DNA of 5,984 nucleotides from Octopus sinensis (Eukaryota). Every line of letters begins with the position of its first letter. Position 1 is the stretch's first letter. The position numbers and the translations under genes are program-made. The notes below the pieces were generated by a model that did not search any database, had not been told where the DNA came from, and worked only from the letters and a program-made list of their open reading frames with translations. The stretch covers positions 1 to 5,984 of the forward strand of contig NW_021829552.1 of the NCBI RefSeq assembly GCF_006345805.1, given 5' to 3'. This document shows positions 508 through 5,255 of this stretch, piece after piece.

Positions 508-717
508 CCTTCCTACTCTAAGCACAAGGCCTGAAATTTGGTGGGAGGGGGCAGTCGATTAGATCGACCCCAGTACGCAACTGGTATTTAATTTATTGAT
601 CCCAAAAGAATGAAAGGAGAAATCGACCTTGGCGGAATTTGAACTCAGAACGTAAAGACATACGAAATACTACTAAGCATTTCGCCCGGCTTGCTAACGT
701 TTCTGCCAGCTCGCCGC
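508..717 (-). mobile_element. Family B tRNA-derived SINE, monomer with tail type 1
   Basis: The minus strand reads GCGGCGAGCTGGCAGAAACGTTAGC (A-box-like), GAGTTCAAATTCC (B box), a diverged copy of the central block seen in the other units (GGTCGACTTTGCCTTTCATCCTTTCGGGGTCGAT), then tail CCCCCTCCCACCAAATTTCAGGCCTTGTGCTTAGAGTAGGAAGG. It is homologous to 4004-4166 and to the heads ending at 1327 and 4582. Confidence 0.9.
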
Positions 718-718
718 T

Positions 719-744
719 TTTCGGAATCTGCGTTCATAAATATT
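719..744. repeat. Target-site duplication of trimer 1, left copy
   Basis: TTTCGGAATCTGCGTTCATAAATATT versus TTTCGGACTGTGCGTTCATTAATATT at 1328-1353: 23/26 identical, directly flanking the trimer. Confidence 0.85.
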
Positions 745-1327
745 TATTTCTTTATTGCCCACAAGGGGTTAAACACAGAGGGGACAAACAATGGGACTAA
801 GTCGATTACATCGACGCCAGTGTAATTAACTTGTACTTATTTAATCGACCCCATAAGGCAAACCCGACCCCGGTGGAATCTGAACTTAGAACGTAACGGC
901 AGACGAAATACATATTTCTTTACTACCTACAAGGGGCTAAACACAGAGAGGACAAACAAGGACAGACAAACAGATTAAGTCGATTATATCGACTCCAGTG
1001 CGTAACTGGTACTTATATAATCGACCCCGAAAGGATGAAAGGCAAAGTCGACCTCGGCGAAATTTGAACTCAGAACGTAGCGGCAGACGAAATACCTATT
1101 TCTTTATTACCCACAAGGGTCTAAACACAGAGAGGACAAACAAGGACAGACAAACAGATCAAGTCGATTACATCGACCCCAGTTCGTAACTGGTACTTAA
1201 CTTACCGACCCCGAAAGTATGAAAGGCAAAGTCGACCTCGGCGGAATTTGAACTCACAACGTAACGGCAGACGAAATACGGCCACGCATTTCGCCCAGCG
1301 TGCTAACTTTTCTGCCAGCTCACCGCC
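745..1327 (-). mobile_element. Family B SINE head-to-tail trimer; all units have tail type 2
   Basis: Units 745-911 (with deletions), 912-1095 (184 bp) and 1096-1327. Each has a B box, central block and tail AATCTGTTTGTCTGTCCTTGTTTGTCCTCTCTGTGTTTAGCCCCTTGT..AAAGAAAT. Only 1096-1327 has the 48-nt A-box head (1280-1327). Flanked by a 26-bp TSD. Confidence 0.92.
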
Positions 1328-3420: not shown

Positions 3421-3910
3421 CTTTTTTTCACATAGTTTAGTCATTGGACAACGGCCATGCCGGAGCATCACCTCGAAAAATTTTCGTCGAATATGACCCA
3501 CTGCACTATTTATTTATTTATTTATTTTTTCTTTGCCAAACTCTCTTATTCATTCCATCGGTTTCTTATGCCCAAAAACTGAGTTAAAGGGTGTTGAAAA
3601 AAAAGGTCAAAAGGGAAGGAGGGGTGAGGTCAAACACACACACACACACGCACATACACACACACACACACACACAGACACAACACACACACACACACAC
3701 ACACACCACACACGCACACAACACACACGCACACACAGAGACACACACACACGCAAGCATTTCGCGTGCGCGCAGCAGACGTTCATACAGTTTCCACGTG
3801 CCAAGTTCACACACAAGGTATAGTGGAAGCCACCTTTTGCAGAGAGCCGTGCTGTGGGACAGAACCCCAAACCACGCGATTGGCCAGCGAATTTCTTTAT
3901 CACACAGCCA
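3421..3910 (-). mobile_element. Family A SINE, full length but old and diverged
   Basis: Collinear with 2142-2815. Tail AGTCATTGGACAACGGCCATGCCGGAGCATCACC (3439-3472), TTCCATCGGTTTCTTATGCC, a (CA)n tract, CAGTTTCCACGTGCCAAGTTCACACACAAGG, and head GTGGGACAGAACCCCAAACCACG...TATCACACAGCCA (to 3910). Confidence 0.8.
3634..3754. repeat. Imperfect (CA)n microsatellite inside the family A copy
   Basis: Direct reading; it accounts for the His/Thr- and Val/Cys-rich ORFs at 3533-3957. Confidence 0.95.
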
Positions 3911-3983
3911 AGCCTACCCACCAGGTAATTATGAGAAACAAAACGGCTAAACTTTGAGTACGAGGCTCGTTATTTGACTGAAA

Positions 3984-4003
3984 TTCAAAAACATTCGTAT
4001 ATT
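3984..4003. repeat. Target-site duplication of trimer 2, left copy
   Basis: TTCAAAAACATTCGTATATT versus TTCAAAGCATTCGTATATT at 4583-4601; the core 12-mer CATTCGTATATT is identical (3992-4003, 4590-4601). Confidence 0.88.
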
Positions 4004-4582
4004 CTTTTCTATTCTAGGCACAAGGCCTGAAATTTTTGGGCAGGGGGCAGTCGGTTAGATCGATCTCAGTACACAGCTGGTACTAAATGTATCGACCCCG
4101 AAAGGATGAAAGGCAAAGTCGACCTCGGCGGAATTTAAACTCAGAACGTAAAGACAGACGAAATACCTATTTCTATTTCATTACTACCCACAAGGGGCTA
4201 AACATAGAAGGGACAAACAAGGACAGACAAACGGATTAAGCCGATTATATCGACCCCAGTGCGTAACTGGTACTTATTTAATCGACCCCGAAAGTATGAA
4301 AGGCAAAGTCGACCTCGGTGGAATTTGAACTCAGAAGATAGACGAAATACCTATTTCTTTACTACCCACAAGTGGCTAAACACAGAGGGGACAAACAAGG
4401 ACAGACAAACGGATTAAGTCGATTATATCGACCCCAGTGCGTAACTGGTACTTATTTAATCGACGCCGAAAGGATGAAAGGCAAAGTCAACCTCGGCGGA
4501 ATTTGAACTCAGAACGTAACAGCAGACGAAATACGGCTACACATTTCGCCCGGCGTGCTAACGTGTCTGCTAGCTCGCCGCC
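4004..4582 (-). mobile_element. Family B SINE head-to-tail trimer with mixed tails (5' to 3': type 2, type 2, type 1)
   Basis: Units 4004-4166 (tail type 1), 4167-4350 (184 bp, tail type 2) and 4351-4582 (tail type 2, full head). A-box-like TAGCAGACACG at 4572-4562 and B box GAGTTCAAATTCC at 4510-4498. TSD on both sides. Confidence 0.93.
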
Positions 4583-4601
4583 TTCAAAGCATTCGTATAT
4601 T
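4583..4601. repeat. Target-site duplication of trimer 2, right copy
   Basis: See 3984-4003. Confidence 0.88.
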
Positions 4602-5020: not shown

Positions 5021-5255
5021 CCTTCGTATCTTATGTTTCCGTTATTGGACCGTGGCCATACTGGAGCATCGCCTTGAAGGGTTTAATCGAACAAATCAAT
5101 CCCATCATTTATTTTTATATCGACTCTGGTACTTATGCTAAAGATTTATGGAGACGTAAAGAATCCGACAGGAGCTATCAAATGGTGGGAACGGACAAAC
5201 ACACACACAACAAAGAACACAAAACATACACACCCATACACATGTACATGCAAAT
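5021..5255 (-). mobile_element. Family A SINE, 3' half (5'-truncated at the CA-rich tract), diverged
   Basis: TGTTTCCGTTATTGGACCGTGGCCATACTGGAGCATCGCCTTGAAGG..TCGAACAAATCAATCCCA, GCTAAAGATTTATGGAGACGTAAA, then a CA-rich tract from about 5195. Collinear with 2142-2400; no head follows. Confidence 0.75.

Follow-up and report, generated by a model that had tools for sequence, protein, structure and literature searches.

An oligomeric octopus SINE with units of two subfamilies inside one target-site duplication

SINE multimers in other animals and in octopus

In chimeras of the U6-L1 type, template switching by the reverse transcriptase (RT) of a LINE joins the 3' end of an RNA to a 5'-truncated copy, within one target-site duplication (TSD). 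HCD-tRNA SINEs of the ark clam Scapharca broughtonii form multimers of the structure TSD1-(SINE)n-TSD1, some of which include elements of another family; the mechanism involved was left open, and unequal recombination was suggested (PMC11481361). Tandem B1-B2, B2-B1 and Dip/B1 multimers of the mouse and the Gobi jerboa are very frequent in some genomes, and their origin is debated, the proposals being insertion into the tail of a neighbouring element and retroposition of a multimeric template (PMC8466645; PMC10702118). Complex SINEs (Alu and others, following the SINEBase definitions) contain monomers placed under one promoter and within one TSD (PMC3531059). The SINE-derived satellites of squamates consist of tandem partial-SINE units, the last of which is longer and extends to the SINE end (PMC10702118). 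Template switching is the accepted route for the exchange of modules among SINEs (PMC4758252). SINEs account for about 11.6% of the O. vulgaris genome (PMC13282606), and their diversification in this genome is poorly described.

The window analysed here is the whole stretch of 5,984 nucleotides of Octopus sinensis DNA. Positions 4582-4004 of its minus strand are one retrotransposed copy of an oligomeric octopus SINE, referred to below as trimer 2. It is 579 bp long, and its three units, arranged head to tail, belong to two subfamilies, type 1 and type 2 (Table 1). The units start with GTATTTCG (plus-strand ACGAAATAC, ending at 4534, 4350 and 4166), and Tandem Repeats Finder reports a period of 178 bp with 2.5 copies at 4049-4514. 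At both junctions ...GAAATAG is immediately followed by GTATTTCG, as in a second trimer of the same window (trimer 1) and in an O. vulgaris locus. The whole array is flanked by a TSD of 19/20 bp, the two copies of which have 12 exact bases in common, a match reached by none of 20,000 shuffles of the flanks. The AATAT that follows the end of unit 3 may be part of the tail or of the TSD. An earlier note on this DNA had described a single TSD around the array and units joined at the same canonical junction, and both descriptions are borne out. The window is dense in repeats and microsatellites, in which reads of different SINE copies might be joined during assembly, but such an artefact is scarcely credible here: the TSD copies on the two sides match, the junctions are in register, and a second assembly independently shows the same junction.

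Table 1. Positions of trimer 2, its flanks and the comparator elements in the window
Feature	Position	Strand	Remarks
5' TSD copy	4583..4601	-	AATATACGAATGCTTTGAA; adjoins first base of head
Head, 48 nt	4535..4582	-	GGCGGCGAGCTAGCAGACACGTTAGCACGCCGGGCGAAATGTGTAGCC; box A-like motif; hairpin loop resembling that of type 2
Predicted hairpin, ~12 bp, spanning head and unit 1	4523..4550	-	GGGCGAAAUGUG-UAGC-CGUAUUUCGUCU; 3' arm with TATTT
Unit 1, subfamily 2, 184 bp	4351..4534	-	box B-like AGTTCAAATTC
Unit 2, subfamily 2 core and tail, ~184 bp	4167..4350	-	6-bp deletion near start; doubled tail repeat GAAATAGAAATAG
Unit 3, subfamily 1, 163 bp	4004..4166	-	end ...CCTAGAATAGAAAAG
3' TSD copy	3984..4003	-	AATATACGAATGTTTTTGAA; holds TTTTT at 3987-3991
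Trimer 1 (comparator)	745..1327	-	head and three type 2 units; junctions after 1096 and 912
Downstream copy of the trimer 1 direct repeat (744-718), then type 1 monomer (717-508)	508..744	-	upstream copy of the repeat at 1353-1328

Trimer 2 resembles the clam multimers in three respects: it lies within one TSD pair, only its first unit has a full head, and the units that follow show the same truncation of the head. It differs from them in its inner tails, which are complete, whereas in the clam multimers a full tail is confined to the last unit, the inner ones having a truncated 3' tail; the inner type 2 tails of the octopus array (...AAAGAAATAG) have the same end point as the terminal type 2 tail of trimer 1 (...AAAGAAATA). 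A further difference from the clam is the position of the octopus junction in a hairpin arm that contains TATTT. As in the rodent multimers, the array is head-to-tail and mixes different kinds of SINE, but the rodent units are full-length, A-tailed and L1-driven, whereas in the octopus array the first 48 nt are missing from the later units, A tails are absent and joining always takes place at the same internal base. The architecture of complex SINEs is fixed and common to all copies, whereas the three octopus arrays vary, and the inner units of trimer 2 are not near-complete monomers of the Alu kind, units 2 and 3 being without the first 48 nt, including the box A-like part. With the U6-L1 chimeras, the array shares the anatomy of a template switch, a complete type 2 tail being joined to base 49 of the next unit inside one TSD; the breakpoints of these chimeras are scattered, whereas the octopus breakpoint is one constant base, and its donor and acceptor are related. 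The squamate satellites can reach 1000 homogenised units and have a subtelomeric preference; the octopus arrays are dispersed and TSD-bounded, and trimer 2 has three heterogeneous units that are 74-93% identical. The octopus case is thus set apart by the fixed hairpin-arm junction with TATTT, the bias in internal tails described below and the presence of two recognisable subfamilies. Mixed SINE multimers within one TSD have been described before, as has the suggestion that switching causes them, and the novelty is modest.

Subfamily typing and other copies of the family

The full monomer of the window (717-508) consists of a 48-nt head (GGCGGCGAGCTGGCAGAAACGTTAGCA...GGGCGAAATGCTTAG..), a body and a tail. 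The body begins with GTATTTCGTCTG and contains the box B-like AGTTCAAATTC and the conserved core GACTTTGCCTTTCATCCTTTCGGGGTCGAT. Two versions of the body and tail exist in the family: type 1 ends in ...GGCCTTGTGCCTAGAGTAGAAAAG(AATAT) and type 2 in ...CCCCTTGTGGGTAGTAAAGAAATA(G), where the tail closes with GAAATA, single or doubled. Relative to type 1, type 2 contains about 20 additional bases, with the type-2-only stretch TTAATCCGTTTGTCTGTCCT, and a near-identical core of about 60 nt is common to both subfamilies.

The units of trimer 2 were typed against consensus references from which all of them were excluded, making the typing non-circular. The type 1 reference was made from five copies (from the window, O. 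vulgaris and O. bimaculoides) and the type 2 reference from the units of trimer 1 and O. vulgaris. Of 25 informative diagnostic columns, 23 place unit 3 in type 1, which it follows from its 13th base through the tail, and it is gapped in alignments across the stretch found only in type 2, TTAATCCGTTTGTCTGTCCT. Its identity is 84% with the type 1 monomer (670-505) and 73-74% with the five type 2 units, which are 84-93% identical to one another. The sequence at the end of type 1 copies from O. vulgaris and O. bimaculoides is ...GTAGAAAAG(A/T)ATA(T/C). In unit 1, 27 of 28 diagnostic columns are of type 2. These trimer-2-free comparisons agree with the earlier note, which had placed the 3' unit in subfamily 1 and the 5' unit in subfamily 2. 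The same note had described the middle unit as a mosaic with a type 2 core and tail and a start derived from type 1. The first part stands, unit 2 being type 2 at 24 columns, type 1 at three and neither at one. The second part is weak because a single base carries it: with the 6-bp deletion best placed (GTTACG), GTCTATCTTCTGAG is one substitution away from type 1 and two from type 2.

The last unit of a trimer consisting of type 2 units could, in principle, have been overwritten by type 1 sequence after insertion, through ectopic gene conversion or unequal recombination. The near-identical core of about 60 nt could support conversion, but the converted tract would have to begin within the 12 bases shared by the subfamilies and end exactly at the 3' end of the element, and an ectopic crossover is ruled out by the intact TSD. 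Change after insertion is, thus, very improbable.

The family is present in O. vulgaris, O. sinensis and O. bimaculoides, in loci around the rhodopsin gene. These 24-kb loci, reached with an octopus rhodopsin query, are L002 (O. vulgaris), L003 (O. bimaculoides) and L004 (O. sinensis). The elements are short (<1 kb), interspersed and repeated, with three loci in the window and independent copies in the three species, and their TSDs vary in length (19/20 bp, 26/27 bp and about 11-14 bp, the last at L003 56-222). A type 1 monomer at L002 22498-22705 has an ortholog in O. bimaculoides that lies inside a small inversion; the monomer and about 53 bp of its 3' flank are inverted (L002 22447-22703 versus L003 18948-19204) in colinear surroundings. 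A rearranged type 2 array is found in O. vulgaris at L002 24008-24260, where a 5'-truncated unit is followed by the canonical junction (AAAGAAATCG then GTATTTCG), a 59-nt piece of a unit ending in TTT, AAAA and a head-only piece. This array is not at the orthologous site in O. bimaculoides, which holds about 800 bp of other sequence (L003 19955-20757); it can be read as an insertion accompanied by deletion of the target, with a probable jump between two SINE RNAs, from the 5' end of the first onto the 3' end of the second.

No SINE of this kind was found in the large contigs L005-L007, which were reached through RTE-like and Tc1-like ORF fragments of L002; L008, a further contig reached in this way, is just 1 kb long. 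Exact-pattern scans with the SINE core in viral, metagenome and prokaryote collections returned no octopus DNA and a single match, in a metagenome contig from an unrelated eukaryote (L001, Ga0209339_1041834), in which positions 1791-1816 are identical to 26 bases of the core (GACTTTGCCTTTCATCCTTTCGGGGT). Judged from these bases, the match suggests a conserved SINE domain common to distant animals. This core, GACTTTGCCTTTCATCCTTTCGGGGT, may be of the Deu/Nin kind, as we presume. The junction-spanning ORF and the ten longest ORFs of the window had no matches in a protein collection, and a full-text search of the literature with SINE sequence strings yielded nothing relevant. L002 contains the decayed C-terminus of an RTE-type LINE with a (GATA)n tail and a decayed Tc1-like transposase fragment (23248-23560 and 18558-19052). 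The RTE-like fragment was considered as the partner LINE of the SINE and rejected, its 3' end, (GATA)n, being unlike the SINE tails; no partner LINE was found in the octopus DNA examined.

Junctions, heads and the origin of the arrays

Three arrays were compared, the two trimers of the window and the O. vulgaris array of L002. The same junction occurs at five places in these three loci, the O. vulgaris junction lying at L002 24115/24116. A tail is followed by a unit start in five of six cases for type 2 and in none of five independent copies for type 1 (one-sided Fisher p ~0.013, computed by hand, the junctions within one array being non-independent). The composition differs among all three arrays. 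Within trimer 2, the type 2 units are 93.3% identical, as against 93.5% between the trimers and 91.3% within trimer 1. The units of trimer 1 carry three different combinations of two sub-markers, GATAAGTTAAG/G versus GATTAAATAAG/A: unit 1 has GATAAGTTAAG with GATG, as in the O. vulgaris unit, and unit 2 has GATTATATAAG with GATA. Because identity within arrays is no higher than between them and the sub-markers of trimer 1 are mixed, the arrays appear to have been assembled from different sources. Local duplication within an array was rejected on the same identities. The claim that duplication of a single monomer cannot produce trimer 2 therefore holds, the 3' unit belonging to the other subfamily and the type 2 units being no more alike within the array (93.3%) than between arrays (93.5%).

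The head of trimer 2 has the loop GTGTAGCC, which resembles the head of trimer 1, GCGTGGCC, whereas the four type 1 heads have GCTTAG... By this sequence likeness it seems to be of the type 2 kind, trimer 1 providing the single type 2 reference head. The head region (97 nt) has a minimum free energy of -36.8 kcal/mol (z -2.27), and an equivalent hairpin is predicted in the heads of trimer 1 and the monomer; the repeat unit begins 1 nt inside the 3' arm of this hairpin. Matches to box A in the head and to box B in unit 1 each cover 8 of 11 positions. No tRNA was called in the element by ARAGORN, no Rfam tRNA match was obtained at E values up to 1, and a D-arm-like GAGCTGGCAGAAACGTTAGC and an anticodon-like hairpin were recognised in the head by eye only. 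TATTT is found at sense positions 50-54 of the head, and it is present at every junction and in every head. Terminators in the Dip and Ves SINE families are reported to consist commonly of TAT followed by three or more T (PMC8466645). Two head-only copies end at or near TATTT (L003 21680-21733 and L002 24008-24053). Five of eight heads directly follow GAA, AAA or AAAA (window 4582, 1327 and 717; L002 24053; L003 21680). These A-rich bases could reflect a second-strand cut preference, additions to the RNA 5' end or a 5' end upstream of GGCGG.

A reasonable possibility, and the origin that we tentatively prefer, is a switch of the RT from a type 1 RNA to a type 2 RNA, the switch point being fixed within the hairpin of the head, either during the insertion of trimer 2 or in an ancestral source copy. 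The single TSD around the array together with the adjoining type 2-like head, the non-circular typing with type 1 at the 3' end and type 2 at the 5' end, the recurrent junction (five places, three loci) with its bias towards internal type 2 tails, and the assembly of the arrays from different sources all count for template switching. So do the occurrence of TATTT at junctions and heads, with the terminator reported in Dip and Ves and the head-only copies that stop near TATTT, and the apparent jump between SINE RNAs at L002 24008-24260. The small number of arrays, just three, limits this reading, and the greater divergence of the 3'-most unit (see below) argues against an origin in one step, though an older or divergent source of the first template would account for it.

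The element was inserted by target-primed reverse transcription at a site containing AATAT. Under template switching, cDNA synthesis would have begun on a type 1 RNA at the target nick. Synthesis would have proceeded as far as GGUAUUU (positions 48-54) in the 3' arm of the head hairpin, moved to the 3' end of a type 2 RNA, in the simplest case a two-unit type 2 transcript, and continued up to its head. One homology-guided switch within the 12 nt common to both subfamilies (GTATTTCGTCTG) would be enough to add the type 1 unit, and repeated origins of the shared junction need not be assumed. A more specific model concerns the choice of the switch point. A type 2 transcript presumed to stop at TATTT would end in ...GAAAUAGGUAUUU-3', and the nascent cDNA of any member of the family at positions 48-54 would end in ...AAATACC-3', which is complementary to the GAAAUAGGUAUUU RNA end. 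Such pairing between the cDNA and the RNA end would fix the switch point, and only type 2 tails would then lie inside arrays, with type 1 units confined to the 3' end. TATTT in the hairpin arm would, thus, serve both as a Pol III stop and as a docking site, allowing type 2 to concatenate with itself at a fixed base. We regard this model as doubtful; the head has its own TATTT, which would also stop transcripts early and counts against the switching account. Microhomology of the cDNA with a tail ending in GAAAUA was also considered and rejected, the two being of the same sense and non-complementary; complementarity arises only if the acceptor ends in GGUAUUU. If the docking model were true, octopus genomes would record switching between identifiable RNAs, and the order of the units would be the order of the templates.

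The array might instead have been copied from a chimeric source gene that already combined a head with two type 2 units and one type 1 unit, so that one Pol III RNA was reverse-transcribed and no switch occurred during the insertion of trimer 2. Transcription of the whole array is possible: the head is of a promoter type, the 579 bp of trimer 2 contain no run of four or more T, and the first such run downstream of the head is a T5 that starts 13 nt past the end of the element, in the 3' TSD copy. An identical junction everywhere would be most simply inherited, and dimeric SINEs that amplify as units, such as Alu, are well known (PMC3531059; PMC10702118). This origin is nevertheless improbable, because the three arrays all differ in composition, no second copy with the unit order of trimer 2 is present in about 79 kb made up of the fetched octopus loci and the window (L002 and L004 largely overlapping), and a prior switch or recombination would still be required.

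Stepwise growth in place is a somewhat unlikely rival to template switching. A type 1 monomer would have been inserted first, with its TSD, and type 2 cDNAs would later have been primed at a nick adjoining position 48/49 of the resident copy, their 5' ends being resolved by annealing to the resident copy, leaving no inner TSD and no extra head. The direct repeat or TSD of trimer 1 (26/27 bp) bears on this scenario. Its downstream copy runs unbroken into the head of the type 1 monomer, stopping exactly at this resident head as a join by homology predicts, suggesting that resolution of a new copy against an older one is possible. The 3'-most unit is, moreover, the most diverged in both trimers, significantly so in trimer 1 only. 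In trimer 1, two deletions and one insertion are found in this unit (911-745), and substitutions are about twice as frequent as in the other units (17 differences in 163 columns versus 18 in 364, Fisher p 0.024; binomial p 0.0012 with the three indels counted). The divergence of the trimer 2 units rises through 2.2, 4.5 and 6.1%, with the 3'-most unit highest, a gradient that is not significant (Fisher p 0.16). Stepwise growth is also consistent with the older appearance of type 1 copies, of which that at L002 22498-22705 has its O. bimaculoides ortholog, with the absence of the sole type 2 array of the fetched loci from O. bimaculoides, and with the type 1-like base just past the junction in unit 2. 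The 3' junctions can be read with a TSD starting with TAT/TAC or with AATAT before it (trimer 2, trimer 1, the monomer and the copies at L002 22498, L002 7349 and L003 56), and the unit start GTATTT holds the same TAT as the TSD starts.

Several features of the arrays tell against growth by steps. In its simple form, in which the old type 1 head is retained, it was rejected on account of the type 2-like loop in the head of trimer 2. This head adjoins the outer TSD, so that an old head would need to have been partly replaced. The five junctions in three loci would each require a nick at the same internal base, a bottom-strand primer at GTATTT is not complementary to a tail ending in GAAAUA, and no half-built intermediate was seen among the loci examined. 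The array had been said to need either template switching or a chimeric master copy. Taken together, these two are indeed the most likely origin, but the statement is too exclusive, as stepwise growth remains a rival in view of the diverged 3' unit of trimer 1 and the repeat that ends at the monomer head.

On present evidence, trimer 2 is an instructive example rather than a new principle. Fixed-junction arrays of recognisable subfamilies would be suitable for asking how often LINE RTs switch templates in vivo, and they could also show the birth of new composite SINEs.

Other repeats of the window

The window consists of repeat-rich, octopus-like DNA. The motif AATATT(A/T)ATGAACG occurs three times between 494 and 1353: ahead of trimer 1 (1353-1340), between trimer 1 and the type 1 monomer (744-731) and, in the diverged form AATATCCATGAATG, past the monomer (507-494); from its sequence, this looks like one target site used again by two insertions. 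At least two other SINE-like families are present, on the plus strand at 2140-2320, 3425-3600 and 5030-5200 and on the minus strand at 2660-2815 and 3770-3920. One of these families holds GGCCATGCTGGAGCACCGCC and runs into (AC)n microsatellites. Another has a GGGTTCAGTCCCAC box B and a CTTGGGCAAGTGTCTT motif, the latter presumably recalling the CORE-SINEs (octopus OR1/OR2).
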